Assembly (NCBI RefSeq): GCF_036588685.1 | Contig: NC_086378.1 | Coordinates: 84,816,001-84,880,000, forward strand | Source: Mytilus trossulus | Lineage: Eukaryota | Length of the DNA stretch: 64,000 nucleotides | Reading direction: 5' to 3' | In this document: positions 700 to 39,581 of the stretch, one piece after another | How the letters are laid out: each line of letters starts with the position of its first letter | Numbering within the stretch: position 1 is the first letter of the stretch | The notes under the pieces: model-generated | What the model was told of the DNA's origin: nothing | The model's database searches: none | What the model saw: only the letters and a program-made list of their open reading frames with translations | Made by a program: the position numbers and the translations under genes

Positions 700-929
700 A
701 TGTTCCAGATTCTAGGAAATTTGATGTATCTCTAATGATATTATTACTTAGAAATCTGACAACATTGGTCCCACCTAGTAGTGGATATGAAACTCTACCT
801 TTATCATCAGAAACTACACCTGCTGCTGATTTAGCCAGAATTAAGTATTATAGGAATTTTTTAGCTCATTTGGATGATGGTAACATAGACAGTACCATGT
901 TCTCCACAGCATGGGATGAAATAACTGAT
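700..929 (+). CDS. Internal coding exon of HEPN-STAND-ankyrin gene: DZIP3-type HEPN domain (upstream exons lie outside the window or were not identified)
   Basis: Polypyrimidine tract and AG at 698-699; GTAAGT donor at 930. Reads (D)VPDSRKFDVSLMILLLRNL...TTPAADLARIKYYRNFLAH...AWDEITD, with the FDxxLMxxLLRN and RxxxxH (RNFLAH, 852-869) motifs typical of HEPN_DZIP3. Ends in phase 0. Confidence 0.85.
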
Positions 930-1877
930 GTAAGTAGACTTTAACTTCACAATTTAATTTTTATCGTGAAGAAATATTTCATGTTGTTGGACATGTGCAC
1001 AATACAAGTTTGTCGTAAATCTTGTCCATCATTCGTCTGCAATCCTTTTATCTACTCACCCTTAAACTTTGAATAAGGAATATAGAAATTTTCAATATAA
1101 TATCTGGGAAATATCAACATGATCAAGTTGAATAGAATTAAGGAAAAATCTGGTTATCTTTTAGAATAAGAAGGAAGGAAAGCTTTCCATGAAAAAGCTG
1201 CTTGTGTAATATTGATATTTCAAGAACCTAGAATCAAATGATAAGGTCGATTTCATGGCCATTGCCTAAGTTAATATCGTCATAATTGTAACATTTAAGA
1301 CGTACAGATGTGAGACAAAATGAACAATTTAGTATGCGAGGCAATATGACCATTTATTAACAAACTTACTACAATATGTATAGAAATGCCCATGCTTTAT
1401 AAAAGGAAAATTTCGACATCTGGTCATTATGAACGGAGAAATTGCTACAGCCAGGCATTACGAAATCTCAGTATGCATTACGAAATCACACCCGTGCATT
1501 ACGAAATCACAGTCATGCATTATGAACAGATGAAACGGGACATCGATCAAAACGAAACGGAAATATTGCACAGCCTTTTTCGAGTACGACTTTCGATTAT
1601 TATAACTGTTTCATGTCCGTTGTTCAATCCTCAGAATGCAGACTTAGAATAGTTAAACTGTCTGACTTATTCTTCCCAGCTTCTTTATATTTGCTAGATG
1701 AAATGAATTTTAATAACATAAAATTAAGAATTTGGATGAGAAATCAGAAATTAACTAACAGTCACAATGTTAACCAAGTTCCATGCAAAATTGAATCCGA
1801 AAAGACAAGTTGAAGTTCACCTATGAAATTCCTGTATCTTTTTCACGGTAAGTTTCTTACTCTTTGTTGAATCGAAT

Positions 1878-3396
1878 GTGAACAATTAAGTATGCGAGGC
1901 AATATGACCATTTAGTATGCGAGGCAATAGACATAATTAAGTATGCGAGGCAATATCACCATTTATAATGCAAGACAATATGAACAATTTAGTATGCGAG
2001 GCAATATGAACAATTTAGTATGCGAGGCAATATGACCATTTATAATGCAAGACAATATGAACAATTTAGTATGCGAGACAATATGACCATTTAGTATGCG
2101 AGACAATATGACCATTTAGTATGCGAGGCAATATGAACAATTTAGTATGCGAGACAATATGACCATTTAGTATGCGAGGCAATATGACCATTTAGTATGC
2201 GAGACAATATGACCATTTAGTATGCGAGACAATATGAACAATTTAGTATGCGAGACAATATGACCATTTAGTATGCGAGACAATATAACCATTTAGTATG
2301 CGAGGCAATATGACCATTTAGTATGCGAGACAATGTGACCATTTAGTATGCGAGACAATGTGAACAATTTAGTATGCGAGGCAATATGACCATTTAGTAT
2401 GCGATACAATATGACCATTTAGTATGCGGGACAATATGAACAATTTAGTATGCGAAGCAATATGACCATTTAGTATGCGAGGCAATATGAACAATTTAGT
2501 ATGCGAGGCAATATGAACAATTTAGTATGCGAGACAATATGACCATTTAGTATGCGAGACAATATGACCATTAAGTATGCGAGACAATATGACCATTTAG
2601 TATGCGAGACAATATGAACAATTTAGTATGCGAGGCAATATGACCATTTAGTATGCGAGACAATATGACTATTTAGTATGCGAGACAATATGAACAATTT
2701 AGCATGCGAGGCAATATGAACAATTTAGAATGCGAGACAATATGACCATTTAGTATGCAAGACAATATGACCATTTAGTATGCGAGACAATATGACCATT
2801 TAGTATGCGAGACAATATGAACAATTTAGTATGCGAGGCAATATGACCATTTAGTATGCGAGACAATATGACTATTTAGTATGCGAGACAATATGAACAA
2901 TTTAGCATGCGAGGCAATATGAACAATTTAGAATGCGAGACAATATGACCATTTAGTATGCAAGACAATATGACCATTTAGTATGCGAGACAATATGACC
3001 ATTTAGTATGCGAGACAATATGAACAATTTAGTATGCGAGGCAATATGACCATTTAGTATGCGAGACAATATGACCATTTAGTATGCGAGGCAATATGAA
3101 CAATTTAGTATGCGAGGCAATATCAACAATTTAGTATGCGAGACAATATGACCATTTAGTATGCGAGACAATATGAACAATTTAGTATGCGAGGCAATAT
3201 GAACAATTTAGTATGCGAGGCAATATGACCATTTATTATGCAAGACAATATGACCATTTATAATGCAAGACAATATGGACAATTTAGTATGCGAGACAAT
3301 ATGAACAATTTAGTATGCAAGGCAATATGAACAATTTAGTATGCGAGGCAATATGACCATTTAGTATGCAAGACAATATGACCATTTAGAATGCAA
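1878..3396. repeat. Minisatellite with 25/26-bp unit TTTAGTATGCGAG(A/G)CAATATG(ACCA/AACAA), ~60 copies
   Basis: Directly visible tandem array. More units at ~4186-4533 and ~5325-5662, and an isolated copy at ~1320-1355. Confidence 0.97.
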
Positions 3397-3714
3397 GTAG
3401 TTATCAAAGGTACCAGGATTATAATTAAGTACGCCAGACGCGCGTTTCTTCTACATAAGACTCATCAGTGATATTCAGGGCTGGTGATACCCTCCGGGAC
3501 GAAACATCCACTATCAGTGGCATCGACCCAGTGGTGTAAATACTTATTAAAGGTACCAGGATTATAATTTAGTACGCCAGACGCACGTTTCGTCTACATA
3601 AGACTCATCAGTGATATTCAGGGCTGGTGATACCCTCCGGTACGAAACGTCCACTATCAGTGGCATCGACCCAGTGGTGTAAATACTTATTAAAGGTACC
3701 AGGATTATAATTTA

Positions 3715-3762
3715 GTACGCCAGACGCACGTTTCGTCTACATAAGACTCATCAGTGACGCTC
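3715..3762 (-). ncRNA. Type I hammerhead ribozyme, core intact
   Basis: Minus strand: GAGCGTCA-CTGATGA-GTCT TATGT AGAC-GAAA-CGTGC-GTC|TGGCGTAC. Stem I GCGUCA/UGGCGU, stem II GUCU/AGAC, minimal stem III. Confidence 0.88.
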
Positions 3763-4061
3763 ATATTAAAATATACAAACAAGTACGAAGTTGAAGAGCA
3801 TTGAGGATCCAAAATTCCAAAAAGTTGTGCCAAATAAGGCTAAGGTTCTCTATTCCTGGGATAAGCAAATCCTTAGTTTTTTCGTAAATTCAAAGTTTTG
3901 TATTCAGGAGATTTATGAAAATGACCACATAATTGATATTCATGTCAACACCAAAGTGCTGACTACTGAGCTGGTGATACCCTCGGGGACGACATGTCCA
4001 CCAGCAGTGACATCGACCCAGTGGTGTAAATAGTTATCAAAGGTACCAGGATTATAATTTA

Positions 4062-4109
4062 GTATGCCAGACGCGCGTTTCGTCTGCATAAGACTCATCA
4101 GTGACGCTC
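4062..4109 (-). ncRNA. Type I hammerhead ribozyme, core intact
   Basis: CTGATGA-GTCT TATGC AGAC-GAAA-CGCGC-GTC|TGGCAT on the minus strand; palindromic stem III ACGCGCGT; one stem I mismatch. Confidence 0.82.
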
Positions 4110-4851
4110 AAATATTTATAAAGTACGAAGTTGAAGAGCATTGAGGATCCAAATCTCCAAAAAGTTGTGCCAAATAAGGCTTTGGCAAGACAGTATGAAC
4201 AATTTAGTATGCGAGACAATATGAACAAAGTTGTGCCAAATAGGGCTTTGGCAAGACAGTATGAACAATTTAGTATGCGAGACAATATGAACAATTTAGT
4301 ATGCGAGACAATATGACCATTTAGTATGCGAGGCAATATGACCATTTAGTATGCGAGGCAATATGACCATTTAGTATGCGAGACAATATGACCATTTAGT
4401 ATGCGAGGCAATATGACCATTTAGTATGCGAGACAATATGAACAATTTAGTATGCGAGGCAATATGAACAATTTAGTATGCGAGGCAATATGACCATTTA
4501 GTATGCAAGACAATATGACCATTTAGAATGCAAGTAGTTATCAAAGGTACCAGGATTATAATTTAGTACGCCAGACGCGCGTTTCTTCTACATAAGACTC
4601 ATTAGTGATATTCAGGGCTGGTGATACCCTCCGGGACGAAACATCCACTATCAGTGGCATCGACCCAGTGGTGTAAATACTTATTAAAGGTACCATGATT
4701 ATAATTTAGTACGCCAGACGCACGTTTCGTCTACATAAGACTCATCAGTGATATTCAGGGCTGGTGATACCCTCCGGTACGAAACGTCCACTATCAGTGG
4801 CATCGACCTAGTGGTGTAAATACTTATTAAAGGTACCAGGATTATAATTTA

Positions 4852-4899
4852 GTACGCCAGACGCACGTTTCGTCTACATAAGACTCATCAGTGACGCTC
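4852..4899 (-). ncRNA. Type I hammerhead ribozyme, core intact (duplicate of 3715-3762)
   Basis: Same sequence as the 3715 copy. Confidence 0.88.
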
Positions 4900-5199
4900 A
4901 TATTAAAATATACAAACAAGTACGAAGTTGAAGAGCATTGAGGATCCAAAATTCCAAAAAGTTGTGCCAAATAAGGCTAAGGTTCTCTATTCCTGGGATA
5001 AGCAAATCCTTAGTTTTTTTCGTAAATTCAAAGTTTTGTATTCAGGAGATTTATGAAAATGACCACATAATTGATATTCATGTCAACACCAAAGTGCTGA
5101 CTACTGAGCTGGTGATACCCTCGGGGACGACATGTCCACCAGCAGTGACATCGACCCAGTGGTGTAAATAGTTATCAAAGGTACCAGGATTATAATTTA

Positions 5200-5247
5200 G
5201 TATGCCAGACGCGCGTTTCGTCTGCATAAGACTCATCAGTGACGCTC
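5200..5247 (-). ncRNA. Type I hammerhead ribozyme, core intact (duplicate of 4062-4109)
   Basis: Same sequence as the 4062 copy. Confidence 0.82.
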
Positions 5248-6579
5248 AAATATTTATAAAGTACGAAGTTGAAGAGCATTGAGGATCCAAATCTCCAAAA
5301 AGTTGTGCCAAATAAGGCTTTGGCAAGACAGTATGAACAATTTAGTATGCGAGACAATATGAACAAAGTTGTGCCAAATAGGGCTTTGGCAAGACAGTAT
5401 GAACAATTTAGTATGCGAGACAATATGAACAATTTAGTATGCGAGACAATATGACCATTTAGTATGCGAGGCAATATGACCATTTAGTATGCGAGACAAT
5501 ATGACCATTTAGTATGCGAGGCAATATGACCATTTAGTATGCGAGACAATATGAACAATTTAGTATGCGAGGCAATATGAACAATTTAGTATGCGAGGCA
5601 ATATGACCACTTAGTATGCGAGACAATATGACCATTTAGTATGCAAGGCAACACGAACAATTTAAAAGCTGGTAACGAAATCTAACAAATACTGTCATAG
5701 ATAATTTCAATTTGAGATACATTTATATAAACGAGACAAATATAAAGTGAAACACATGGTAAGTTACTAGATGAGGTATTAACAAACAATAAAGGTTTAA
5801 TACCCTTCAAAAATTGGGTGGGATATAATATTAACAAAGTGTTCCTGTCCTGTCTGTCGGATTGTCCATAGATCTTGAAAGTGAGACTGATGCTTGAGGC
5901 AGAATAATTTTTGTAGCAACTGAATAGGACAGATTATTGTTTTGTCAAAAAGAGTGCAGATTATTTTTTGTCAAAATAGAGGCCAGTTTTTCTTTTCTTA
6001 AAAAAAAATTCCCCTCTTTTCCCCTTATTCTCTTTTTTTTTGTTTAGTCAATTTTTCTCTATTTGTAATTAAGTAATTTCTTGTCAATTCTTTAAAGCCC
6101 ATACCAGCCTTAATAAGTGATGGGTAGATGTTTAGGAGATTATGTAATTTAGGAAAACTTTAACTCAAATAGCTGTTTCCTATAATATGTTTGTTTTTGT
6201 TTTTGTTTTTGTCACTCACTAATTGTGTTTAAATAAAGATATTTATATAAAACAAAGGTTACAGGTTAAACCTTTTTAATATTTGAGACAATCATGCAGA
6301 AATGTTTTCCACACCGTACTTATTTTTCAGTTTCGGTTCTAATATTTTCGTTGATAACTCAGTGCCTAATTTCTTTGATAACTATTGTTCAATGATATAT
6401 TTGTACTATTTGTAAACATCAATATATATATATTTATACGTCATACTTTGAACGACAATTTTTGTTTATGTCTACCTGTGCAAATTTCAAACGTGCAATT
6501 TTACCCCAGTACTGAAAACCTTCTATCCTTTACGGGTAAACTTTACATGCATAAATTAAGTCGTATACGAATAACAAAA

Positions 6580-6950
6580 TTAGTATGTCAAATTTGATGT
6601 ATGCCTTTTTGTGCTTCTTCGTTACATTTGTTGTTTTTAAAGTGATATTAGGATGATTACACATTATTGACTGCTTTTCCCTTATTTTTGACATTTTTAT
6701 TCTTTGAGTATGTTTGTTCATTCATCGTTGACAATGTAATGGAATTTAATGCGACTGTCATAAAAGTGAGAGGTGTAGCTGGCTAGAGATCCAGGTTCAA
6801 TCCACCATGTTCTACATTAGAAAATGCCTGTACCAAGTCAGGGATATGACAGTTGTTATCCATTCGTTTGATGTGTTTGGACTTTTGATTTTGCCTTTTG
6901 ATTTTTGATTTTCATTTTGGAGTCTAGTATTTTTGTGTTTTTACTTTTTT
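6580..6950 (+). repeat. Dispersed interspersed repeat family, unclassified
   Basis: Shared motif AAAGTGAGAGG..AACCAGGTT(C/T)AATCCACCAT...TTTGATTTTGCC. Related copies at ~395-660, ~40130-40445 and ~40740-40866, and reversed at ~28940-29130. Confidence 0.7.
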
Positions 6951-9900
6951 TATGGGATAAATAATTAGAGGTCCTTGCGAATTTAAATGAACTTCAATCT
7001 AATATTTACTCATTTTTAGAAAAGATATTTTATCACACCTTTCGAATTCCCCCCCCCCCTTTTCAACTTATATAGCGCGTGAAGAATACTAAGGAAAACA
7101 TAGATTTTGTTTAAAGCACCGTACTCAGTATCAGCATGATAGGTCATTATATGATTTTAAATATGTTTACTGGTCTCAAATTTAAACATCGTATGGTGTT
7201 ACTTCATTAAATGTATAAAAAGGAATTTCAAAATTTGCCGTTAAAAATGTAAAACTCTGATCTTCTATTTGTATAACTACAGTTCCAATGTGGTGTAACT
7301 TCAATTCACACATTATAAAATTATATATATAATAAGAACACTTGTTCTGAAAGGTTGAAAGGCAAGATACAAAAAAACTATAACACAAAATAGATCAAGT
7401 TAGACATAACTTTTCAGCAGCAAATATTTCAAAAGGTAACAACACTCGTCAAACAAAAAATAACCGGAAAAATAAAAATAGCACACTCTTTTCTTTATGT
7501 CCCAAGCCATGATCGAGTTTCCAATTTAGAGCCGTTGTCTGTATTTTTCAGAAACTACATTGTTATAAATTATCGCATTAGTTTTCATGTTAATTTTACA
7601 TTTTTTTTTTAATTTAATAAAGCATCTCATTAAGACAAATACTCGATATGAATATCTAGCCAATTGAATTTTGGATACGCAAACGTCAAGTTATGTTCGA
7701 CACGAAGCGGTGGTTTTCTCCTGATTTGTGCAAGAAGTTACCTCCTCTTGATACAGTAAGATTTCCAGTGACACTAGAACAATAGAAAAGTCACTCTTCT
7801 TATGAAAGAGATAGAAAAGGTCTAAAAACAGGAGAGACAATTTACGCATAAAAACCGATATGCATATGGATGAATATCTCTTAGAACTCAAAACCATTAT
7901 ATAACTTTTATACAACCACTATAAATAAAGTATATGTTAAAGCTAAATTTGTTAATATATGATTTTGTTTTATTTCCAAACATGCTGTTAATTGAACAAT
8001 TTATTGTTCAACATAGAGGTGTGTAAAAAACTGCCAGATTTGATTGCATATTTTTCTTCTTTTTTTATAATAAAATATATTTCAAACCTTTATAATGTAG
8101 CTATCTGAGTATCCACTTTGAACGTGTTCCGAAATGTAATTTCGTCAAAGTTGTGTCATTTTGTCTATATGAATGTCGGTAAATTCGTATGATCGAGTAC
8201 AACCGACAAGAATATCGTTGGGACAACTCGATATAATGTAATCAATATACGTGAAAGAATACCTAATGTGAAGATTATCAAAATCAGCATATCATAATTG
8301 ATCAACACATTATGTTTGAACAACATGAGTCCTTTAATATAAAATTTTAAAGGTGCATATCATTTACATTCAACGTTTTTATTGGATTTTTTTTCTACAA
8401 TGTAACCTCGGGGTTCAACGTTGATAGTAAAACAAAATCCAAGAAATATTTTGAATGATATTGTAAATGATATGAACCTTCGAATTCTTATAATATCGGA
8501 AAAGAAAATATGTGATCCGAATTAACAATGCACGTGTGTAATAGAAGATTATGCACGTTAATGATGTACTACAGGGGATAAGGGTTTTTCTTAAACAATA
8601 TTATGATCCCAAATTTAATGAATTTTGTTGGAAATACTTTAAGATAAACACTAAATATAGCAAAGTATATGTTAAATCTCAAGGTATTATTATTAGGAAA
8701 AATGTTTGACTCGGTAAACAAAATCTTGCCTCCCCCGTATTGCATGTAATGGTTGAAACCTAAGGGATTCGCATTTACTGCCTAAAAGGGGCCAGCTACA
8801 GTCTTGAATCAGTGATTTTGTTTATAATAAACCAAATATTGTCTCACACTGAAAGAGGCAGGCGGGCAACATGCACAGCCCAGCTTGGCAAAACAAACAA
8901 CTACGATTTACAAAACATTACCAACCATTACCAACAAAAAACTTCAGTTGGGCAATCTTACTGGAATCTGATTATGGGCAATCTTACTGGAATCTGATTA
9001 TCTCTATGCAACACTAATGACACATTTAAGTTTTGGAATGATTTTATTCACAAAGAATGTTTCTCATTGGTATGCATTTCTATGCTCTTGTCTTTTCGGA
9101 GTTTATATTGGAAATTAAAAATTGCTGCATAAAAGAGACTAGCTCCAAATTCCTATGCATATGCTTGTCATATGTACGAGAAGCATTGCATAAAACATCC
9201 GTTTGATATCCTTTAAATGCATGACACTGTTTAGTGGTTTTTCTGCAAAAAATACAAGGAAAACTAGCTAAACTTGTGCTAAATCAAACACTTGAATCTT
9301 ACATCGCTATTGATGTTAAGCAACCGGTTTAAAGAGCCATCCGGAACTGTTGGGTTTTATGACAGTCTTCTTTCCATACAGACCATCGCTGCAAAATAAT
9401 TTGAACATTCAATTAGATGATTATAATATTATTTGGCAATCAAAAGAGACCTGAAAATATAAGACCACAACGAACAGAGACCCCCCCCTAAAAAAGTCAT
9501 TTTACTTTTCAATGAAATTGAAAAAGTAGTTAGTTGCATGTAAAATCATCTTTTGGCTGTCGACATCAAATAAATAAAATCTAAATTTCGTAGCAGTTTA
9601 CCCCCTCTTTTTTTTACTGAGCTTGTTCAAGAAATGGTCGTTTTATCCCTTTTCAGATTCAGTATGTCATGTTGTATATTTTTCATACATTAGTTGAACT
9701 TCTAGCATTTTCTATTTTTTATCATTTGACAAAATACTATGCATCTGAATTAAATTGTTTGCTATTTGAAAAAGCGCGCCTTCTTTTACTTTAATTTACT
9801 TCCCTTTATTTCACATAGCAACACAAATTAAAAACTGCCAATATTTGCTGTATATCAATTTTTCCCCCGATAAAAAAATATATATCATGCAACATAATCA

Positions 9901-9983
9901 ACTTTACAAATTGGGAGAAAATCAAGGTGTTCCAACCATTGGATAGTATTAAAAAAAAATAATGAAAGGAAGGCATGATTACA

Positions 9984-12455
9984 AAAAAAGGGACAGTCAA
10001 ACTCATAAATCTAAAACAAACTGACAACGCCATGGCTAAAAATGAAAAAGACAAACAGAAAAACAATAGTACACATGACACAACATAGAAAACTAAAGAA
10101 TAAACAACACGAACCCCACCAAAAACTAGGGGTGATCTCAGGTGCTCCGGAAGGGTAAGCAGATCCTGCTCCACATGCGGCACCCGTCGTGTTATCGTTT
10201 ATTAAGCAATTAATGTAATGACTTTTACAGACATTTATCAAGCAATTAATGTAATGACTTTTACAGACAAAAACGATGTTATTTGGGGCTTTGTCTGCGG
10301 GGACAACAACATATTTATCATGGAGGTCGGATAGGTGTTTAGCAACATTTGGGTCTTTAAAGATTGACGTAGCATGGGCATTGATGGACCCATTCAGTTT
10401 CTTAATTCTGATTTGTATTAAGGACCTCACTGCCTTTATCCATTCGGATAGAGTGTCTACGTCTTCCTTCTCCTTGCCTGGCATAATCCTCGACTGAATC
10501 CATCAAAATTTTAAAGTTGTATTTCCAATGATGGATTTAGGCTCACGATATTTCGGACCTTTTGATAACACGTTTCGTAGAGAAGTGTTATTAACAATGT
10601 TAAGGTCACCGGTAATAACGTGGCCAGCAGGATTATATGTGAATTGGGAACTAGCACAAGTGCAATCAGGAGGTTTAGACTTGAAGTCGTCAATATCGAG
10701 ATCCTGCAAAACGCGTTTGTAATTGAAAATTTTAGTTGCAATAGGTTTGGTATAGGTATAAGAAATTATTGGTACAGACTGGTCTTTAAAATAAGGAGGT
10801 ATTTTCGATTGAACTATTTTAGATGAAGGATATTGCCAAGGTTGATGCCATCGAGACCTTTGTTGGCAAAGGAAATATTTAGAAAAGATCTTTTCTCTTT
10901 TACATGTTTTCCAATGCGAACTGGCTTGAAAAATCTGTGACTTGCAATATCCGAAATTATAGCTTGAAGTTTGTATTGGTTTGAATGAGGGTTTGTAACA
11001 GTGGATTCCAAACATAATTTGAACAGAGAATGAAGTTTTGAAAGGGGTAATGAATAAAGTTTCGTGCGAATGTGATGAATACCTAACGGTTTTTGTATGA
11101 ATGGCAGCAATTCATCAATAGAGACATCATGCAGAGAGGGTGATGTATAATGACGATGACCATGACTGCGTCTACGTCGAGGAGTCGAGTTGAAAATATT
11201 CATTACATTCACCGAGTTACACGAAGGACTAGATAGAATACCTATACCATCAATTTTGTCATTGCAGCCATACGGTGTTGCAGTTCCCAATCGTCTAATC
11301 CAGTAGTCTTCTTTTTGTCTACGGAGAGTCGTTGAAAGATTAGGATTGTTAGAGCAATGGTATATCTTTTCGATAATGCGAACTGTCATAGAAACGATGG
11401 AATGATCAGGTTGATTGAAATGCTGGTATAGAATGTCGTTAGCATTGAGGTTAATGTCTGATCTATGACCGCACATCCGTTTGTTTATCCTTCCTTTCGT
11501 TTCACCGACGTATACCAATCCGCAAAGGTTGCACTCTAATCCGTAGACGACATTTATCGATTTACAATTCAGATCATCGTAACTTCTGGTAAAATATGAC
11601 TTCTTGGTCAAATTGCTAGTGATTTCAGCATCTGTAATTAAAATAGCACAAGTTTTGCAGCCTTTGGTCTCACATTTTGAAATGCGACAGTGTTGTACTG
11701 TGTCATCAAAAACCAAAATGTCTTTAAGGAGAACTGAACATGGCTGTATATGTGTAATGTTGCTGTTGTCACTAGGACGATGATCTGAATGAGTCGTGTT
11801 TGGGATATTTGTCATGTCTGGTGATGAGGGGACACCTGCCGTATCAGACGACACCGTGTCCATGGTGACGTCTGTTTCGGACCTTTTTATACTGGGCGAC
11901 GTCCGAGCCAGTTTCCTGTTAGTTCTTCGTAAGTTCATGCAATTGTTGTTTTGCTACTGGGCGGATGATGTCCTCGGGGACAAATTGTCCACCAGCAGAG
12001 ACATCGACCCAGTGGTAATAAAAGAGGGACGAAAGATACCAAAGGGACAGTCAAACTCATAAATCTAAAACAAACTGACAACGCCATGGCTAAAAATGAA
12101 AAAGACAAACAGAAAAACAATAGTACACATGACACAACATAGAAAACTACAGAATAAACAACACGAACCCCACTAAAAACTAGGGGTGATCTCAGGTGCT
12201 CCGGAAGGGTAAGCAGATCCTGCTCCACATGCGGCACCCGTCGTGTTGCTTATGTGATTACAAATCCGGTTAATAGTCTAATTCGGTAGGTCAAATTCAT
12301 GAAAGGGAAGGTGATTGTATTTACGACGTAAGGAAAATATCCGATATCATTTGTGAAATGGTTATTCCATAACGGTCAACCAACTAGTGATGGCGTCCGT
12401 AAAATTTACGAAGGGATGATTTCAACTTCACCATTTAGAACTCTTGATTTAATAG
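9984..12455 (-). mobile_element. Penelope-like retroelement with N-terminal GIY-YIG (Naiad/Chlamys-type domain order), RT core deleted, flanked by direct copies of its 3' end (pseudo-LTR)
   Basis: ORF 10814..11938 has a Cys cluster (CxxxxCxxC) and VVYGLECNLCGLVYVGET...RMCGHRSDI (GIY-YIG). Frameshifted continuation KGPKYREP...VVVPADKAPNN (RT N-terminal part). 3'-end repeat at 9984-10195 and 12017-12455; the latter encodes the RT C-terminus KSSLRKFYGRHH*LVDRY. Confidence 0.88.
10814..11938 (-). pseudogene. PLE polyprotein N-terminal part, GIY-YIG endonuclease
   Basis: 374-aa ORF with GIY-YIG motifs and EDYWIRRLGT...PYGCN; ends by frameshift, with the continuation in ORFs 10503..11015 and 10011..10484. 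Confidence 0.85.
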
Positions 12456-12742
12456 TTGAACCCTGACAACACTGAAAATCAAAATTCACGAGGTGATAAA
12501 CTTAACAATAAATATGTTACCTGATTTGTTATCATATTCACATTATGTTGACACATCTTAGTTCGTTTGTGCTAGCTCATTTTTAACAAGCTAAACAATT
12601 ACAGCATTGTCCGTTTTTCTTTGCCAATTACCTCTAATCAGAAGAGCGCATTGTTTACAGGGGAGGTGATATTTTGTCACTAGTTCGCCCACTGTAAATT
12701 ACAAGTCAAAATTTTTTGAAGTCTAAATTTGATTCTAGAAAG

Positions 12743-18807: not shown

Positions 18808-18997
18808 GCAATTGGCAGAATAGGTGGACAGCATATGAAACAGGAGTGTGATAATTTAAAAAGCAAAACCTTAGACCAAAGTAGCCAAGAGATCATGTTA
18901 GACATCAAGAATTCAAACGATGAAATAAAGGAGTTGAAAATGTCAGTTGAGAGCTTGAAAGAAGTCAGTGAAGATACACTACCTTGGAATGTTAGAG
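18808..18997 (+). CDS. Internal coding exon of the same gene: end of HEPN helix plus coiled-coil-like linker
   Basis: TTTATAG acceptor (AG 18806-18807), phase 0 matching the previous donor. Reads AIGRIGGQHMKQECDNLKSKTLDQ...IKELKMSVESLKEVSEDTLPWNVR-G. GTAAAT donor at 18998, phase 1. Confidence 0.8.
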
Positions 18998-23964: not shown

Positions 23965-25392
23965 AGATGCATGTTTTTTTTTATTAGTTTTAAGTGGCCT
24001 TGAACTAGCTGTCAGATAGCTGTCAGATAACTGCGCGTACTCTCAGATCTGTTTATTGTGTCTTTTTGTGTCGGGATGTATACTGACCGACTTTAGAAAC
24101 GCAACACTAGATTATTTTTGTGTTCCTTTTGAATAAATGTGTCCCCGTCAAAAGCAATGACTGCATGTGGCAAACGCCTAAATAATTGTCCGAAAGGTCA
24201 GCGAATTTTGTCTGACATGTTTTGGGTTCTGTTTTACACCTTCTGGTTTTGCATTTGTTTAACCCATTAATTGGTTTTGGCAATTATGCGGTTGGAACTT
24301 GAGGGCTTTTAAGGGTATCATTCAGTCAATTCTTTGGCAATTCAGTGGATGGGAAACATTTATGGCATTAATCTGTACTAAATGGCACTCGGCAATTTGA
24401 TAAGCAGTTGACGTTGCGGCCGTAAACATGTCTTGCAAATGATGTTGCGTAATCAAATTCTGTTGACGTTTCATTGTCACTAAACGTTTATCTGTTTATT
24501 GATGGCCAGCAACAAATCTTGTCCACTTGTATCGTTGTCGGAAGGACAGAAAGATGAGTTTCTGAAGTCATACAGTATGGTTGCAGCACGTTTATATTTT
24601 AATGTTTGCAGGGTTCTTAAGGGTTAATTCAGTTTCTTGTTTCTCTGTCTTGGCAAAATGGAGATGCAACAATTTCAAACTGGTTAAAGTGAGGCAAATG
24701 ATTGAAAGAACTGTTTCACAAAGCAAAACAAGTGAAACAATCTTTCATGGGTCCAAAATTTTGCTTTAAGAAATTCGTGCGAAAAAAATCGGTATGTTCA
24801 ATAACCACAGGTAAGTCAGATTTTGATTTTTTGTACGGAGAAAGAAGAATGATAAACATGCAAAGTAGTTGTAGGAAAATCAAACAAGATTTGGTAAAAA
24901 AAAAATCACCAAAACAAGTGTTGCGTTTCGAAAGTCGTTCAGTATATAAGTCCCCGGTCACGTTCACTTGTATTTTTGTCCATCTGATGAGTTAAGCATT
25001 TTCAACTGATGTTAATAGTTCGTTCTTTTGTTGTACTGTTATACCACTGTTCCAGGTTAGGGAGAGGGTTGGGATCCCGCTAACATGTTTAATCCCGCCA
25101 CATTATTTATGAATGTCCCTGTGCCAAGTCAGGAGCCTGTAATTCAGTGTTTGTCGTTAGTTTATGTGTTACTTATTTGTTTTTCGTTCATTTTTTACTA
25201 AGGCCTTTAGTTTTCTCGTTTGAATTGTTTTACATTGTCATATCGGGGCCTTTTATAGCCGACTTTGCGATATGGGCTTTGTTCATTGTTGAAGGCCGTA
25301 CGGTGACCTGTAGTTGTTAATGTTTGTGTCATTTTGGTCTTTTGTGGATAGTTGTTTCATTGGCAATCATACCACATCTCCTTTTTTTTATA
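23965..25392 (+). repeat. Dispersed repeat (probable PLE 3' end) ending ...TCATTGGCAATCATACCACATCT, interrupted by the Tc1 element
   Basis: Homologous copies reversed at 29992-30355 and 49315-49860; the last is contiguous with a PLE RT remnant. Confidence 0.72.
24081..24944 (-). mobile_element. Decayed Tc1/mariner-type element inserted at TA within a dispersed repeat
   Basis: TIR TACTGA(C/A)CGACTTT(A/C)GAAACGCAACACT at both ends; TA duplication splits host ...GGGATG|TA|TAAG.... Minus-strand remnant LVTMKRQQNLITQHHLQDMFTAATSTA resembles the Tc1 transposase HTH region. Confidence 0.78.
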
Positions 25393-28300: not shown

Positions 28301-29530
28301 AAAATATCACAGTCTTTGTATAGCTATCTCTAAGGTATAAGATTTAGTCATTGTTGAAGACCGAACAGTGACCAATAACTATATCCACACTATTTTATCT
28401 CTGGAGGATAGTTGTCTCATTAGCAATCATTCCTGATTACCACATCTATTTTGGTATGTTTATAAATCATGTCCCAAAGGAGGAAAAACACATATTTGGA
28501 CAAGTTAATTCAGATCATCTTAATTAAAATAAATATTGAACATGTACCTTTTCCTGCTTCGTGCTTGGTAATATTTTCCAATTTGAAGACAGTACATCCT
28601 GGTGCGACAGACAACAGATTTTTGACCTGGGCACGTTGGCAAATAGTACAGTACATGCTCTTCTTTTCCGGATGGTCTGTTATGTCACCACTGTTCCTTA
28701 AAACCTCTAACTTCAACCTTTTGTGATGATTTCGGGTCCTAATAATTTCGTCTTTCAACAGTTGTACATGTTCTGGTATAGAATTTCGTTTAGACAAACT
28801 GGAAGGGATCTGAATGAATCCGAAATTTTAGTTATATTTATAGATGTTTCTTCAAAACAAAAGTCTCCTGTTTCGGACCACCGCTAAAATGTAAAGATAA
28901 AACGTAAGAATTATCTTAAAACAGGAATGTTTGAACGATAGTGAAATCACAAAAATACTGAATTAGAGAAAAATCAGTTCGGAAAGTCCATACTTACTTG
29001 GCAAAATCAAATAACAAAACGCATCAAAAACGGATGTAACACACACAGTAACGCACTGTAATATAGCCATGGCCATTTTCCTGACTTGGTACTGGACATT
29101 TTAAGAAAACAATGGTGGCTTGAACCTGTACTAATATAACATACAGATCATCAATCAATCTCTTTACAAATAAGACCTAACATTTACCATTTCTTACCCA
29201 ATGGTGCAAAATGCATCTACCTTTTCGTATCATATTTTTGTATAGTTTTTCATTATTTTAAAGTTATTTTTCAATATAACATATTGAATCAAATTATGCA
29301 TTTAGACTTAACAATTTTATAAAGACCGATGATTGGTTTGATTTAGCAGCATTGTTTGCAGGATTTGATTTTAATTAATTGTTAAACCCTTTAAGTATGG
29401 GAGTTAATGACCAATAAAGACATAATTATCAGCAAAAGTGTGGTACATGGATTTAACTTTCAACATCATTAGGAAAACAATATATCTTCCTCATATTTTT
29501 CAATATTAGTTACATAATCGTTGATACAAA

Positions 29531-29990
29531 AGGTTCAAATGGTATTACATATAAATCTTCTATGAGGTACGAAATGATATTACGTATAAATCTTCTATGA
29601 GGTACGAAATGGTATTACATATAAATCGTCTATGAGGTACGAAATGGTATTACGTATAAATCTTCTATGAGATACGAAATGGCATACATATTAATCTTTC
29701 ATGAGGTACGAAATTGTATTTCATATAAATCTTCTATGAGGTAAAAAATGGTATTACATATAAATCTTCTATGAGGTACGTAAAGGCATACATATAAATC
29801 CTCCATGGGGTACGAAATGGTATTACATATAAATCTTCCATGAGGTATGAAATGGTATTATATATAAATCTTCTATGAGGTGCGAAATGGCATACATATT
29901 AATCTTCCATGAGATATAAAATCGTATTACATATTAACCTTCCATGAGGTACGAAACTGCATACATGTTAATCATATATGGTATGAAATG
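29531..29990. repeat. Minisatellite with 35-bp unit GGTACGAAATGGTATTACATATAAATCTTCTATGA, ~13 copies
   Basis: Visible 35-bp periodicity (TATGA at 29561, 29596, 29631...). Stray units at ~30356 and ~30602, beyond nested insertions. Confidence 0.95.
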
Positions 29991-31678
29991 TAAAAAAGAC
30001 GATGTGGTATGATTGCCAATGAGACAACTATCCACAAAAGATCAAAATGACACAAACATTAACAATTATAGGTCAACGTACGGCCTTCAACGATGAGCAA
30101 AGTCCATACCGCATAAAGTCAGCTACAAAAGGCCCCAATAAGACAATGTAAAACAATCCAAGCGAGAAAACTAACGGCCTTATTTATGTAAAAAAATGAA
30201 CGAAAAAAAATATGTAACACATAAACAAACGACAACCACTGAATTACAGGCTCCTGAGTTGGGACACGCACATACATAAATAATGTGACGGAGTTAAACA
30301 TGTTAGCGGGATCCCCCTAACCTGGGACAGTGGTATAACAGTACAACATAAGAACAAAATGGCATACATATAGAATAATAGGTAGTTTCGTAAACTGACT
30401 ATATCATGTGGAAGATCTAGACGAGCTCGTTAGGGTTGGTTAAGATATCCCTCATGATATAGTCAGTATCAAAAACGAAACTACCTATTATTCTGTTTAT
30501 CAGTAATGTATTGCCTAATATTTTCAGTGATACAGCCAGTACGTTGATATTCAAAAATATTAGGTAGTAAGATCAAAGGTAAAATATACGAATAACCGAT
30601 AAATATTAATCTTCCATGAGGTACGATAAAAAAAAAGTAATATCACAAAAATGCTGAACTCAGAGGAAAATTAAATCGGAAAGTCCATATTCACATATGA
30701 TTTAAATTACTTTAGAATGGCCCTTCATATATACTAAAAATAACTCCCTATTTACATTTGGAGTACCACATTCATTCTTGAAATGGGTACACACTTTGTA
30801 TAATGATTATAAAGGATGCCGATATAATTACGGCTGTATCTCAGGAATAAAACTAAGGATGTCTATGATTTTTGTCGAGTCTGCAACTTTTGTTGCAGAA
30901 GGCTCGACATAGGGATAGTGATCCGGCACTTCTTTTTTTTCAAACTAATGATACAATATAGGTCTGTGCGGCATATTTTCAACGTTAATATGCAAGAAAC
31001 TTCTAAGAGTTTTAACTAACACTAAATTTCTAAACTACCCCTATCTCGACTGAAGGGTTACCACAGATTTCTATATAAACAATTTTAACATGTTTATTTA
31101 CTTGTATAATTACACCTTATGTAAGAATCTTGGATTTTGATTTGTTGATAACCAGTGTATTTTTCACCAATTTACTGTTATCAAATGAATATCGTTCATA
31201 TTTTAACGCCGCCGGCGTATTTGCCAAAAGAATACGTCTTGTTTACCCTCTCTCCCTTGGTATTTGCCCAAAACGACTCTATCCGACTGGACGCTTGTAA
31301 CGTCACGATCATCAATTCGTTGAAAAATGATATATCTGTTTAATTTCCCCAAGTTATGTCTCAATGAGTTGCAACTTACATTGGGAACCAGTATGTAAAC
31401 AAAATTAATTATCTATGAATATTATATATCTACCACAAAGAGGGGTGGTTTGAGAAATAGACGATTTACAAAGTGTTACCGAGACACACATTTGTTCAAA
31501 TAGAAAAAAAAAATTCTCACATAAATACTCACTCACACTCACTTCATATACTCTGAGGTTTGTTTTACTGTAAATTTTATAACACCTCCTCTCTTTTAAT
31601 GTTTTCGAGAAATTGAAAACAAGTCTTTAATTATTGTCCGATTACCATATTTTCATGTTTTCTGACATAAAATGCCTA

Positions 31679-32157
31679 CACAGGTACTTTTGAATAGGTG
31701 CTATTTCTGTACTAAAAATATGTAGTACTGGAAATTTACTTTTAATAATTAGCACTATTTTTTTACTTTAAAATTTTGTAATATATAGGTACTTATATAA
31801 TTGAGAATATAAATTGGGAATATGTCAAAGAGACAACAACCCAACCATATTTTTGTATTTTACAGTACTTAAATTGTACTGAATATTTTGGTACAGAAAT
31901 AATACAATATTCCATGTTTGAAAATCATAATTTTAAGAGATTTGAAATAGAAAAACTTTCAAAATGTTGAAAATATAATGGTTGTAACCAAAATTCTGTA
32001 GTACCTAAATTTCAAGTACAAATTAAGTACTGTAAAATACAGGTACCTAAATACTACAATAATTTTAATGTAACAAAATAGTACTGAATATTAAAAGTAA
32101 ATTTTCAGTAATTCAGATTTTTAGTACAGAAATACTACCGATGCAAAAGTAGCTGTG
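31679..32157. mobile_element. MITE with CACAG(G/C)TACTTTTG TIRs and TA flanks
   Basis: TA-CACAGGTACTTTTG ... CAAAAGTAGCTGTG-TA; interior rich in AGTAC/GTACT subrepeats. Confidence 0.7.
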
Positions 32158-32226
32158 TAAAACCAGTTTAATACTGTTCTGATATCATTGAAAGATTTTA
32201 GAATAAGAAAAAAGAAAAAAATAAGT

Positions 32227-32600
32227 AAAAGAGGAGCGAAAGATACCAGAGGGACAGTCAAACTAAAAAATCGAAAATAAACTGATAACACCAAGCTAAA
32301 ATGAAAAGACAAACAGACAAACATTAGTACACATGACAAAAAAATAAATAATTAAAAGCAACGCAAACCCCATCAAAAACTAGGGTGAGACCAGGTGCTC
32401 CGGAAGGGAAGAAGATTCTGCTCCAAATGCGGCACAAGTTATCTTATTCATGTTATAAGGAATCCGCTAAATCTCACTTCACCATTTGAAACTCTTGGTT
32501 TCACAGCTTCCTTTAAGCAGCAATCGTCTATCAAGGAAATCTATGTAATGTGTAGCAATCAATCATTCGAACATTTAAGGTTGTATAAATTATCCAATCC
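32227..32600 (-). mobile_element. Diverged PLE 3'-end fragment (same family as 12017-12455)
   Basis: AAAAGAGGAGCGAAAGATACCAGAGGGACAGTCAAAC...GGTGCTCCGGAAGGG, plus a remnant of the RT C-terminus. Confidence 0.78.
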
Positions 32601-33984
32601 CGCCTCAGTCTCCAGTCCCAATCTTACTTTGCCGCGGTGAAAGGAATACAGATTTAGGTGGAACGGCTTACGTTTAGGATATCGCCAGGACAAAAACACC
32701 CTTCTAATAATTTTCAGGATGTATCTATGAGTTTCAATGACTGCGAAGAGTAAATATAAGCACTTCTTCACAATTTAAATTACAAATATTCATACATTAA
32801 TAATTTATTTTGCATTCAGGCCTCTAAGTAAATTATGCATACTTAAAACTCAAAATGTTTGCTGCGACATCATATTTAAGGCCAAGGATTTTATCAATCT
32901 TCATGAAATATTTATAAACCTTAAAATAAAAGTATATATTCATTAGAATCTGTGAGATAATGTTCTGTATGTTCTCATGTTTCACCCAATATAATTATCG
33001 AACAAGTATGTTAACACAATTAATTACCTATGAATATTCAAAATCTCCGCACCAGAGACGTGGTTTACGTCGTTTGTTTTCTCTTATTTTTTTAGAGTTG
33101 ATTCGCATTGCGTTAAGACGTGTCACGGTACTTGTCTATCCCAAATTCATGTGTTTGGTTTTGATGTTATATTTGTTGTTCTCGTGGGATTTTGTCTGAT
33201 GCTTGGTCCGTTTCTGTGTGTGTTACTTTTCAGTGTTGTGTCGTTGTTCTCCTCTTATATTTAATGCGTTTCCCTCGGCTTAGGTTTGTTACGCCGATTT
33301 TGTTTTTTGTCCATGGATTTATGAGTTTTGAACAGCGGTATACTACTGTTGCCTTTATTTGAGCTACACTCGTATTTACAAAGTGAAATCTAAAAGAATG
33401 AAAAAAAATACAAACTCAATAAATCCTATATTAAAAAGGACTTTGACAAGGAACTTTCAAGAGTTTATTCCTAGATTTTCCTAAGTTATTGTATATGAAT
33501 AACAATATATCCAAACGCACTGACTTTATAATTCAAACTTCTGTTCTAAAACGAGGGAGAAGTAGTATATTTAATTTGGTTAAATTGGTTTCTGCTGCAG
33601 GTAATAGACATGTCAATCATTATGTTCCACATAGCATACATCTAATAATCATTTTAGTTTTTACAGTTGTAGCCTTAGATAAATTACGCTTTTGGTTTTC
33701 GGTCCCTTTTGGTAATTGATCTCCTAAAATTTTACATATTCATACATTCGTGGCTTTAATTTGTTAGGCTTGGTCGTTGTTAATAATGTAACCCATAAAA
33801 GCGCTTCTGACACACGCAATTTATAAAATGTTTTCCTAATCATGTGTCATTTAAAATTAAAAAAAAACAAATATTTAATTAGATATGTCAGAGATAATGC
33901 CCCAAAACACAAGGAAATATTTGATATGAGTTATACAAATGTCTGAACTTAATATTATATAATTATTTTATAAAAAAATTTCAG

Positions 33985-36900
33985 AACAAAACAACCAGAT
34001 ACTTGAAGACTGGAAAACCAATGATCATATGTTTATAAACACTAGAGCTGCAAAACATATTCTGCAATGTGTAAAAAAGAACAATTGTGTGACAATTACT
34101 GCTAGTTCTGGTGCGGGCAAGACGGCTACGCTCCGACATGTAGCTTTACAAATGGCATGTGAAGGATATGATGTTCTGATGGTAACAGATCCGAGTGACG
34201 TTTTCAGGTTTTACAATCCAAAGAAAAAAACATTGTTTGTTATTGATGATTTATGTGGGAACTATTCTTTAAACCATACTGACACTAGAGTTTGGGAAAC
34301 TGTAATAAAACGATTAAAAGGAATACTTCATAAACAAATGACAAAAGTTATTGTAGCATGTCGGTTACAGGTATACCAGGATGCAAAATTTGAATCTTTA
34401 TCTGTTTTTAAGTCGTGTGTCTGTAACATGTTATTTGATAGTTTGCGTTTGTCAAAACCTGAAAAACAATTAATAGCTGAGTTATATCTTAAAACAAAAG
34501 CCAATGAAATAGCTGATTTCCACGATTTATACGATTGTTTCCCACTTATATGCAAACTTTACTGTGATAATCCAAGCAGTTGCATCACAGATTTTTTTCA
34601 GAATCCATTTTCAGTTTATGAAGCAGAGATAAACAAACTGCGTTCAAAAGGATATTATGCCAAGTACGTTGCGTTGGCTTTATGTGTCATTTTTAACAAC
34701 AGACTGAAAGAAGAATATTTGACAGATGAAGTTGATGACGACACACGGACTATCATTGCAAACACTTGTGAGGCATGTAGGCTGGACAGCGGAACATCCA
34801 GACTCATTCTAAAAGATGAACTAGATTCACTTTTATATACATTCATAAAGAAGGAACAACAAGTATATAAAATTATACACGATAAAATATTTGACTTTCT
34901 CACCTTTCATTTTGGACAGGAGATAATCCAGTGCTTAATTAAAAATGCACATAGCAGTTTGATAATGGAACGATTTTTATTAGAAAGTCAGATAAATGCA
35001 GACCAGTTTATAACAACTGTGCCTCGTAAGTATCATCAAATGTATATTAAAAGAATGATTGATGACTGGTTCAAAGGTAATGTAAAGGACGTATTTTCAA
35101 ATATTAATATGAAAATTCCACAGTTCAGGCAAAGATTTTTATGGTGCTTAGAGGAACTTGACATACCTTACCAGAAACAGTTAGCTCACACGAATGACAT
35201 AAACAACAATGATACTATACTGTTAATATGTTGCTTAGTTGGTGATATTGCCATGGTTAAGTGGTGTTTGAATCACGATGTTGATGTTAATCAATCAAGG
35301 GATGATGAAACAACTCCAGCCCATGTAGCTGCCACGGAAGGTCAAACAGAAATAATACGATTGTTGTTAGACAGAGGAGTAGATTATAATAAATGTAACA
35401 ATGAAGGTTGGTCACCTGTTATTTGTGCATGTAACAGAGGTCATACTGAAATTTTAAAGATGTTCGTGGATAAGGGAGTAGAATACAATAAATGTGAGAA
35501 TGATGGTAGGTCGCCTATCATATTTGCTTGCATCGGCGGTCATACAGAAACAGCAAATATATTGCTGGACGTTGGGGCAGATTATAGGACATGTGATAAT
35601 TTTGGTAACTCACCGTTGATGTATGCTTGTAAGAAAGGATCTACAAAAATAGTTAAAGATTTGTTAGACAGAGAAGTAAATTATGATATATGCAACAACG
35701 AAGGTTGGTCTCCTGTTATGTTTGCTTGTTCTGAAGGACATACAGAAATAGTAAGGATTTTGTTAGAGAGAGGAGCAAATTGTAACAACTTTATAAACAC
35801 CGGTTTCTCACCTCTTATGGATGCCAGTAAGAATGGACGTAAAGAAATAGTTAGAATGTTGTTAAACAAAGGGGCAGATCACAATAAATGTAACAATAAG
35901 GGTTGGTCCCCTGTAATGTTTGCTTGTTCTGAGGGGTATATAGAAATAGTTCGAATTTTATTAGAGAAAGGGGCAGATTATGATAAATGTAACACTAACG
36001 GTTGGTCACCTGTGATGTTAACTTGTTCTAAAGGGTACACAGAACTAACAAAAATGTTGTTAAAAAGAGGGGTAGATTATAATAATTGTAACATCGATGG
36101 TTTGTCAGTTATAATGTGTGCTTGTAAAAATGGAGGTATAGAAATAGTCAGAATGCTTTTAGATATAAATGCAAGTTTCGATAATTATGACATAGATGGT
36201 TGGTCACCTGTAATAGTTGCTTGTACCAGTGGACATACAGATATAGTTTCTATACTATTAGACAGAGGAGCAGATTTTAATAGATGTGACAACGATGGTA
36301 GGTCACTTTTTATGTTTGCATGCTCTCATGGGCACACAGAATTAGTACGTGGTCTATTAGACAGAGAAGTAGATTATAATGCATGTGACAATGATGGTTG
36401 GTCTCCTGTTATGTTTGCTTGTTCTACAGGGCACAAAGACATAGTGCGGATGCTATTAGAGAAAGGTGCAATAATTAATAATATTGTAAATAAAGGGTTA
36501 TCACCTTTGATATCTGCTAGTAAGAACGGACATACAGAAATAGTAAGAATGTTATTAGAAAACGGAGTAGATTATAATAAATGTAATAATAAGGGTATGT
36601 CACCTATTATGGTTGCATCTTTTGAAGGACGAATTGAAACAGTACAGCTATTAATAGAGAGAGGGGCAGAATATAATAGACGTGACAATGACGGTAGGTC
36701 ACCTGTAATGTTTGCAAGTAGCATGGGACATATTGAAATATTGAAAATATTATTAGACAAGGGAGGATATTATAATAATTGTAACAATGATGGTAAGACC
36801 CCATTACAATTAGCTTGTGTAAATGGACATACAGAAATAGTTCGGACATTATTAGCGATAGGCGCAGAAAATAAATGCGACTTCAATGGTTGGTCACCAT

Positions 36901-39581
36901 TAATGTCTGCAAGTGAGAATGGTCACCTGGAAATAGTTAACATTTTAATAGAAAAGGGAAATAGTTGTAATGATGTTGACTGGGAAAACATATATCGTGC
37001 AAGGTTTTTTTATATGCACTCAAGAGATTCAATAGGTTTTAATCGTTTCATGCATAGAAGACAGAGGAATATATTTTCAATAACAAATCATTGGTCACCT
37101 TTATTACTTGCATGTGTCAATGGACATACCGAAATAGTAAATATATTGTTAAACAATGGAGCATCATGGGTTTATGAATGTACCCTTGATGGTTCATCAC
37201 CTTTAATGTTTGCTTCTACTGCGGGACATACACAAATAGTTAGGATGTTGTTAGAAAAAGGAGCAGATTATAATATGTGCAAAAATGATGGTTGGTCACC
37301 TATAATGGCTGCGTGCAGATTTGGACATGCTGAAATAGTAAACATGTTGTTAGACAAAGGGGTTGATTATAACAAATGTGCCAGTGATGGTTGGTCTCCT
37401 ATATTGTACGCATTTAGATATGGACATACACAAATTGTAAAATTCCTGATAGACAAAGGTGTTGATTATGAGAAAATTGACAGTTATGGTTGGCTTCCTG
37501 TGAAGTATGCTTATAAATATGGACATGTAGAAATAGTAAGAATGTTGTTAGACAAAGAAATATATTATAATGAATGTGATAATGATGGTTGGTTACCGGT
37601 AACGTTTGCAAGTAGACATGGACATACAGAAATAGTCAGGATGTTGGTATCCAAAGGAATTGATGTTAATAGATGCGACAAGAATGGGGTTTCACCGTTA
37701 ATTGCTGCTAGCAGATATGGACATACTGTTGTCGTAAGAATGTTGATAAACAACGGAGTTAACTATAACCAACTTGACCATGAAGGCTGGTCGTCTTTAA
37801 TGCATGCTTGTAGATTTGGGCATGCACAAATAGTAAGGATGTTGTTAAACTACGTAGTAGATTATAATCAATTTGAACATGAAGGTTGGTCGTCTTTAAT
37901 GAACGCTTGTAGATATGGTCATGTCAAAATAGTAAGGATGTTATTGGACATAGGAACAGATTATAATAAATGTAACAATGATGGTTGGTCACCATTAATT
38001 CATGCTTGTAAAAAGGGATATATAGATATAGTGAGAATGTTGTTAGACAAAGGAGCTAATTATGATAAATGTGACAATGATGGTATGTCTCCCTTAATGT
38101 TTGCTTGTAGCAATGGATACATAGATATAGCAACGGTGTTGGTAAACAGAGGAGCTGATTATAATCATGTTGACAATGATGGATGGTCACCTTTATTATG
38201 TGGTTGTGACAATGGACATTTAGAAATAGTAAAAATGTTGCTAGAAAGAGAAATAGATGATTTGGATTATTCTTTATTGTTTGCATGTGAGAAAGGGTAT
38301 ACGGAAATAGCAAGGATGTTGGTCGACAAAGGCGTTGATTATGATAACTATGACGATGATGGCTGGTCACCTTTAACGTATGCATGCGACAACGGACAGA
38401 CAGAAATAGTGAGGATGTTATTAGACAGAGGAGTAAATTGCAACACTCATGAATCTGAGGAAGCGTCACCTTTGATATGTGCATGTAAGTTAGGTCAAAC
38501 AGATATTGTAGAGATGTTGTTAGACAAAGGAGTCGATCTCAAAGTGTGCAGCGTTGATATTTGTTCATCCATAATGATTGCTTGTTTCTTTGGACATACA
38601 GATATTGTAAGGAAATTTCTAGAAAAGGGAGTAGATTTTGAAATATGTGACAGTGATGGTTACTCACCATTTATGTTTGCTTGTAGAAATGGACATACAG
38701 AAATAGTAAGAATGTTAATTTTACAAACAGATATTAATAAATGTAATGATAATGATGGGTGGTCACCTTTAATGTATGCTTGTGACAATGATCATACAGA
38801 TATAGTCGTGATATTGATTAACAATGGAGTTGATTGTAATGCATGTGACAAGAGTGGGTGGACACCAATTATGTCAGCTAGTATTTATGGATATGCAGAT
38901 CTAGTAATTATGTTGTTACACAAAGGAGCGCAATGTGATAAACGTACCAATGATGGTTGGTCACCTTTAATGTATGCTTGTGTGTATGGATACAAAAACG
39001 TAGTAGAGGTATTGCTAGACAGCGGAGCTGATTGTCATAAATGTAACCCTGATGGTGAATCACCAATTGTGTTTGTATGTATGTATGGTTATATGGACCT
39101 AGCAATGATGTTAATAGACAGAAAAGTAGATTATAATAAATGTGACAATGATGGTTGGTCACCTTTGCTTTATGCCTGTAAAAACGGACATTATTATATC
39201 GTAATGATATTGCTATTGAAAGGAGCAAATTATTATAAATGCAATAATGACGGTGAGTCACCAATTATGTGTGCCTGTGAGTATGGACATACAGAAATAA
39301 TAAAGATGCTGATTGATAAAGGAGCAGATTATACTAAATTTGATAATAATGGTCGGTCACCAATAATGGTTGCTTGTCAAAATAGACATTCAACAATAGT
39401 AAAGATGTTTATATTAAAAGGAGTAAATTATAAAATATGTGACAATGATGGTATGTCACTGGAACAAATTGCCTATGAAATGGGTCTCATGGACGTAGTT
39501 GAGCTTATAAATGACATGCCGGGAAGAAAAAAAGAAGAAGACAGAATGATAAAAAAAAAGGGGAAAAAAAGAAAAACATGA
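33985..39581 (+). CDS. Terminal 5.6-kb coding exon: STAND P-loop NTPase (nSTAND3-like) + helical/winged-helix region + ~40 ankyrin repeats + basic tail
   Basis: TTTCAG acceptor (AG 33983-33984) in phase 1 gives E-QNNQILEDWKTNDH, running in frame into the 1850-aa ORF 34029..39581. Walker A SSGAGKT, Walker B LFVIDD, sensor-1-like IVACR, GxP-like CFPL, MHD-like IHD, then 33-aa repeats of the form YNKCDNDGWSPLMxACxxGHxEIVRMLLxxG. Confidence 0.93.

Follow-up and report, generated by a model that had tools for sequence, protein, structure and literature searches.

Does a long open reading frame (ORF) made up of ankyrin repeats on a mussel chromosome encode a plain ankyrin protein, or is it the end of a larger, spliced gene for a receptor with a ribonuclease (RNase) effector? 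The question arises from a stretch of 64,000 nucleotides of the Mytilus trossulus genome (assembly GCF_036588685.1, contig NC_086378.1, positions 84,816,001 to 84,880,000), referred to below as the window and numbered from its first base; positions outside it are given on the chromosome that carries it (C6). An ORF listing of the window contains a single part of the gene considered here, the frame of 1850 residues at 34029-39581. A preliminary description had remarked on this, and had joined that frame to two small exons far upstream, reading the whole as a HEPN RNase, a STAND-type nucleoside triphosphatase (NTPase) and an ankyrin sensor combined in one protein. The reading preferred here, to which a probability of about 0.6 is given, is that the gene encodes a mussel HEPN-coiled coil-nSTAND3-ankyrin protein acting as an immune or anti-selfish-element sensor, the first coding exon of which is unassembled or was lost near an assembly gap.

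Exons, domains and gene family

Three coding exons with canonical splice sites were recognised, all on the plus strand, as are the introns, motifs and domains described with them; positions and junction phases (0, then 1) agreed with those given earlier. All homology searches were run exon by exon, with the exons kept separate rather than joined into one protein. The upstream-most exon in the window (700-929) is the second coding exon of the family plan and encodes the core of a HEPN_DZIP3 domain (profile positions 39-114). It is preceded by the acceptor ttttttccag/AT and followed by the donor GAT/gtaagt; its frame is read from 702, bases 700-701 ("AT") being the rest of a split codon, and it closes on a full codon (phase 0). 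The following exon (18808-18997, acceptor atttatag/GC, donor AGAG/gtaaat) encodes the last HEPN helix and a coiled-coil linker, and ends in phase 1, so that a Glu codon is split between its one leftover base and the opening two bases of the last exon. The last exon (33985-39581, acceptor aatttcag/AAC, stop codon TGA at 39579-39581) has 1864 codons plus the stop, and encodes the nSTAND3 NTPase, a helical region and the ankyrin array. Beyond every exon boundary the open frame ends within 0-9 codons, and about 2004 codons are open over the three exons, with intact splice sites. Intron 1 (930-18807) is 17.9 kb long and filled with repeats, and intron 2 (18998-33984) measures 15 kb. The extra coiled-coil exons present in some paralogues were not detected in intron 2, and no family exon besides the three was found in the window.

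The peptides of the three exons align contiguously in more than 50 annotated Mytilus proteins, for example at residues 75-150, 151-213 and 215-634 of one of them (P0003), and at residues 74-148, 150-212 and 214 onwards of a M. coruscus protein (P0093), which is the closest Mytilus protein to exon 700-929 (82.7% identity). The three-exon structure is very probably secure, and the window holds three of the four predicted coding exons of one family member.

Exon 700-929 matched the HEPN_DZIP3 profile (Pfam PF18738) with 80.9 bits (cut-off 27, E = 1e-22) over positions 39-114 of 144, and so not over the whole domain. The tail of the domain was assigned by homology to exon 18808-18997, and profile positions 4-38 fall on the first exon in homologues (residues 39-73 of P0093). 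The HEPN domain of P0093 covers residues 39-176, indicating that it is built from the first exon together with the counterparts of exon 700-929 and of the start of exon 18808-18997. The Rx4H motif, RNFLAH with an Asn after the Arg, was read from the sequence at 852-869. Over 55 homologous segments the Arg was conserved in all (55/55), and the Asn and the His in 54/55 each, as would be expected of an active site maintained across diverged paralogues and homologues; loss of the motif among paralogues, which had been named as a sign against the RNase proposal, was not observed. A sequence search of the PDB with exon 700-929 gave no match. The N-terminal HEPN domain of the preliminary description was thus upheld as regards the profile match and the intact motif, and fell short as regards completeness. 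Exon 700-929 is not the first exon of the gene, a point the preliminary description had missed: an upstream coding exon is expected, because an acceptor and two bases of a split codon precede position 702 and only part of the HEPN profile is matched.

Structure and complex predictions were made with natural homologues or with exon 33985-39581 alone. The model of P0093 had a mean predicted local distance difference test score (pLDDT) of 87.7, and a long first helix (residues 6-33) that is encoded by the first exon; Foldseek matches of the homologue model were dominated by its NTPase domain. A homodimer predicted for residues 1-215 of P0093 scored 0.76, compared with 0.00 for the best of three controls, with a contact agreement between runs of at least 96% and a partner pLDDT of at least 89. 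The mark used to call such dimers is reached by 21/30 microbial proteins solved as one-chain pairs and by 0/23 single chains; for eukaryotes the corresponding figures are 17/29 (7/16 for animals), with only 1/7 among those that have no older solved relative, and 0/30. Confident contacts lay mostly in helix 173-203, the coiled coil that is the counterpart of exon 18808-18997, and otherwise in the first helix and at residues 131 and 133, directly after the catalytic His; the Arg, Asn and His of the Rx4H motif were not among them. The oligomer prediction that had been proposed as a check therefore came out above its controls in this homologue, with pairing mainly through the coiled coil. The model supports pairing of the N-terminal module and, since the contacts are mostly in the coiled coil, hints at a dimer that may be constitutive rather than formed purely on ligand binding.

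The last exon matched the nSTAND3 profile (Pfam PF20720) with 95.9 bits (cut-off 27.2, E = 2.6e-27) over exon residues 16-169 (34032-34493), with weak further matches to nSTAND5, nSTAND7 and AAA_22. The NTPase motifs are intact and were found to be conserved in homologues: Walker A (GAGKT, 34110-34124), Walker B (LFVIDD, 34233-34250), a nearly invariant Pro (P186 of the exon), and an MHD-like IHD motif (34875-34883, exon residues 297-299, after a predicted beta-hairpin). The His of the IHD motif is kept in 18/22 ungapped rows; the model of residues 222-296 is of low confidence, and structural matches cover only residues 1-233. The model of exon residues 1-420 (pLDDT 70.5) shows a P-loop alpha/beta core, and its structural neighbours include Dark (Z 11.2, root-mean-square deviation 4.0, 187 residues aligned), Avs5 (Z 11.0), MalT (Z 10.3), ZAR1 (Z 9.7) and Avs4 (Z 9.6).

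The rest of the exon is occupied by ankyrin repeats with a 33-residue period (35200-39520), about 40 of them by spacing and about 37 as scored by Pfam. One ankyrin loop holds an in-frame insertion of 111 nucleotides (37 residues) at 36981-37091, with TGG at both flanks. An unspliced intron was considered for this segment and rejected, because the segment is in frame, flanked by TGG and without GT-AG ends; it resembles a small insertion tolerated within the array.

The genome searched comprised 1.3 Gb in 14 large contigs. At least 150 HEPN_DZIP3 exon matches (the best of 582 candidates), at least 100 nSTAND3 exon matches (the best of 510 candidates) and at least 150 first-exon matches were scored, so that the paralogue count that had been called for stands at a minimum of 100-150 paralogues scored, out of over 500 candidates. 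These counts describe a family of several hundred mussel genes, of which the copy in the window is an ordinary member. The closest paralogue among the matches listed is only 70% identical to it. At least six paralogues have a first, a HEPN and an NTPase exon arranged in this order on one strand, all within 4-16 kb, a compact example having its exons at C3:13159110, 13161590 and 13163506. Among annotated proteins, the NTPase region recurs in 70 from Mytilus (32-70% identity), most of which have PF18738 as well, and all the protein relatives found come from Mytilus species. A tandem cluster of the family was observed past the window end (C6:84886068-84887324 and C6:84900210-84941541). It includes an intact-looking paralogue with its first exon at 84900210, its HEPN exon at 84931272 and its NTPase exon at C6:84940288; the last of these has an open frame of 1889 residues and lies about 90 kb downstream of its counterpart in the window gene.

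Proposed role, missing first exon and rival explanations

The tripartite architecture, together with the intact catalytic and NTPase motifs, makes it reasonable to regard the predicted protein as an NLR-like or Avs-like sensor with a putative RNase effector. By analogy to other STAND proteins, the ankyrin array would bind a ligand, binding would lead to nucleotide-dependent oligomerisation of the NTPase, and oligomerisation would bring the N-terminal HEPN domains into an active arrangement in which RNA is cut, giving an intracellular immune or anti-selfish-element sensor. If the dimer is constitutive, the part of the STAND switch would be to rearrange or cluster dimers that already exist, not to create them. 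The tripartite receptor of the preliminary description is thus borne out in its architecture and motifs; the idea itself had already been published, and this copy comes without its first exon. Tentatively, the family as a whole may be a working receptor repertoire, in which a coiled-coil-paired RNase would be triggered by nSTAND3 oligomerisation on binding of a pathogen's or a transposon's product to the hypervariable ankyrin array. It is a similarly tentative suggestion that this repertoire would correspond, in animals, to the Avs-type defence of bacteria, with a STAND clade and a sensor type unstudied in any animal.

Several results weigh against the sensor reading. Full-length homologues have about 73 additional N-terminal residues, highly conserved, and the family first exon that encodes them carries both the start codon and the initial third of the HEPN domain. 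This exon was not found at window positions 1-699 or in the 130 kb that precede the window, and none of the 150 scored genome-wide matches of the first-exon peptide lies upstream on this chromosome, the sole one near the window being the downstream paralogue's own. The HEPN domain is accordingly incomplete as modelled, because the first coding exon is missing from the assembly. In the copy at C6:84886068-84887324, 6 kb past the window end, the NTPase exon carries two TAG stops and is a pseudogene, indicating that decay does occur in the cluster. No near-identical protein was found in a collection of 5.8 billion proteins, in which the best match was 70% identical over the NTPase part. In the fold comparison, proteasomal, DnaA and Pex AAA+ chains tied at Z 10-11, leaving STAND and classical AAA+ proteins unseparated; since they score equally, the fold search alone does not establish STAND membership, which is established by the Pfam profile. 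Finally, the literature found reports no RNase activity for any DZIP3-type HEPN domain.

The missing exon bears most directly on a rival that is rather unlikely and the strongest of those considered, namely that the copy is a duplicate that lacks its 5' end, with the start codon and part of the HEPN domain, and is thus a young pseudogene or, at most, the source of a truncated product, and not a working receptor. The absence of the exon from the window, from the 130 kb upstream and from all the scored matches upstream on the chromosome would follow directly from such a truncation, as in paralogues 1-9 kb usually separate the first exon from the HEPN exon that follows; the introns swollen by retroelements and the adjacent copy with two stops would fit it as well. 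However, the open frame over all three exons, the intact splice sites and the conserved catalytic residues count against it, and the assembly offers another place for the exon. A gap of 100 Ns, the true size of which is unknown, lies 25.5 kb upstream of the window (C6:84790405-84790504), with only retroelement ORFs between the gap and the window. The distance from first exon to HEPN exon is 1-9 kb in compact paralogues and 31 kb in the neighbouring paralogue of the cluster, suggesting that long introns are local practice. The first exon of that neighbour (C6:84900210-84900425, 72 codons) ends in phase 1 (CCT G/gtaagt), precisely the phase that the two leading bases "AT" at 700-701 require. A gap of unknown size and a 31-kb intron in an intact neighbour together mean that the first exon may simply be unassembled. 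The copy is either gap-truncated or 5'-truncated; most likely its first coding exon lies within the gap or was lost around it, and a true 5' truncation has a distinctly smaller chance.

A second rival, which we consider improbable, accepts the gene as intact and takes the HEPN domain for an RNA-binding or regulatory module, so that the protein would serve as a scaffold or a hub for signalling, or would work outside immunity, for instance in controlling transposons or in allorecognition. Human DZIP3 (hRUL138) is an RNA-binding ubiquitin ligase. The lack of reported RNase activity for DZIP3-type HEPN domains would agree with such a role, as would a predicted dimer held mainly by the coiled coil, with the Arg, Asn and His outside the confident contacts. 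Against it stand the near-invariance of these three residues over the 55 diverged segments, and the location of the domain N-terminal to a STAND NTPase, which is the usual effector position (PMC3710099, PMC9646362). It is very improbable that the two small exons and the large one are remnants of separate copies on one strand, as their spacing of 18 and 15 kb might suggest, given that order, strand and both junction phases match the family plan exactly, that no other family exon lies between the three or elsewhere in the window, and that in P0093 the three pieces follow one another directly, an additional exon being absent.

Transposon surroundings of the gene

Intron 1 contains two type I hammerhead ribozymes on the minus strand (4064-4107 and 5202-5245), each with 35 bits against an Rfam gathering score of 34; they are 1138 bases apart, and the pair is consistent with retrozyme or Penelope-associated repeats. 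ORFs on the minus strand at 10011-11938 of the same intron gave no Pfam matches. Positions 1-200 of the window are a short interspersed repeat, with thousands of copies of about 95% identity on all chromosomes (5281 first-look candidates).

Upstream of the window by 8-9 kb, an ORF on the plus strand (C6:84806676-84808007) combines a reverse transcriptase with a GIY-YIG endonuclease and is of Penelope-like type, and a second reverse-transcriptase ORF lies close to it on the minus strand. Downstream of the gene, decayed pieces of non-LTR (non-long-terminal-repeat) retrotransposons were observed on the minus strand at 43450-57904, where two AP-endonuclease ORFs (44332-44847 and 56110-56742) and an ORF1-like protein with a zinc knuckle and part of a GDSL esterase (45822-46946) were located, also on the minus strand.

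Relation to known systems

The DZIP3/hRUL138 HEPN family was defined by Anantharaman and coworkers in 2013, who described animal fusions to ankyrin, NACHT, CARD, DEATH, LRR and TPR domains as well as oyster and Nematostella expansions specific to these lineages, and suggested that the proteins degrade RNA in an RNase-L-like or antiviral manner (PMC3710099). More than 50 HEPN-NACHT proteins were reported from a pearl oyster by Takeuchi and coworkers in 2022, with an Rx4-6H motif in 194/202 proteins and a proposed RNA-degrading function likewise (PMC9646362). In a cnidarian survey HEPN was the commonest partner of NACHT (PMC8260672), and the nSTAND clades were named by the Aravind group (PMC8195603). 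The proposal of a HEPN-STAND immune RNase is therefore not new, having been made in 2013 and again in 2022. No paper was found that discusses or tests the combination of HEPN_DZIP3, nSTAND3 and ankyrin repeats, though this combination is present in public annotations.

If the proposed mechanism is true, a mussel would possess hundreds of sensors, each a single protein that cleaves RNA upon recognition, which would help explain the resilience of bivalves to viruses and would tie the STAND immunity of animals to that of bacteria. For the wider HEPN-STAND group this idea has been published, and the locus in the window adds nothing to it. Its practical value is an annotation correction, in that the apparent ankyrin-only ORF belongs, as the last exon, to a HEPN-STAND gene; better candidates for experiments are the intact compact paralogues elsewhere in the genome.

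The closest known proteins are the annotated HEPN_DZIP3-nSTAND3-ankyrin proteins of M. coruscus, M. edulis, M. californianus, M. trossulus and M. galloprovincialis, entered under names such as "DZIP3-like HEPN domain-containing protein" and "Novel STAND NTPase 3 domain-containing protein". Their domain order and exon plan are those of the window gene, to which they are 50-83% identical per exon, and they share its Rx4H, Walker A, Walker B and IHD motifs. The window gene differs from them in its longer ankyrin array (1864 residues in the last exon alone, compared with mostly 1000-1500 for their whole proteins), in its far longer introns, in the lack of an assembled first exon and in having no ortholog more than 83% identical. 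The HEPN-NACHT proteins of bivalves and cnidarians share with it an N-terminal DZIP3-type HEPN domain, a central STAND-class NTPase, C-terminal repeats and large expansions, and are likewise proposed to be RNA-degrading immune receptors. In contrast to these, the window gene has an nSTAND3 domain with no NACHT (PF05729) match in the Pfam scan, and its sensor is an ankyrin array instead of LRR, TPR or WD40 repeats; with neither NACHT nor LRR, it is not a canonical NLR.

RNase L resembles the window gene in having ankyrin repeats together with a dimeric RNase of the HEPN superfamily, but the window gene is not RNase L. The order of parts in RNase L is the reverse, running from ankyrin repeats at the N-terminus through a pseudokinase to a KEN-type HEPN domain at the C-terminus, whereas the window gene has a P-loop NTPase as its switch and gave no kinase or KEN match in the Pfam scan. 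The bacterial Avs (AVAST) proteins, and other STAND defence proteins with nuclease effectors, follow the same logic of effector, NTPase and repeat sensor, and Avs5 and Avs4 appear among the fold matches of the NTPase model cited above. This likeness ends at the NTPase fold, where the scores are tied with those of AAA+ proteins, and the window gene stands apart from these bacterial proteins as an intron-bearing animal gene with an ankyrin sensor.

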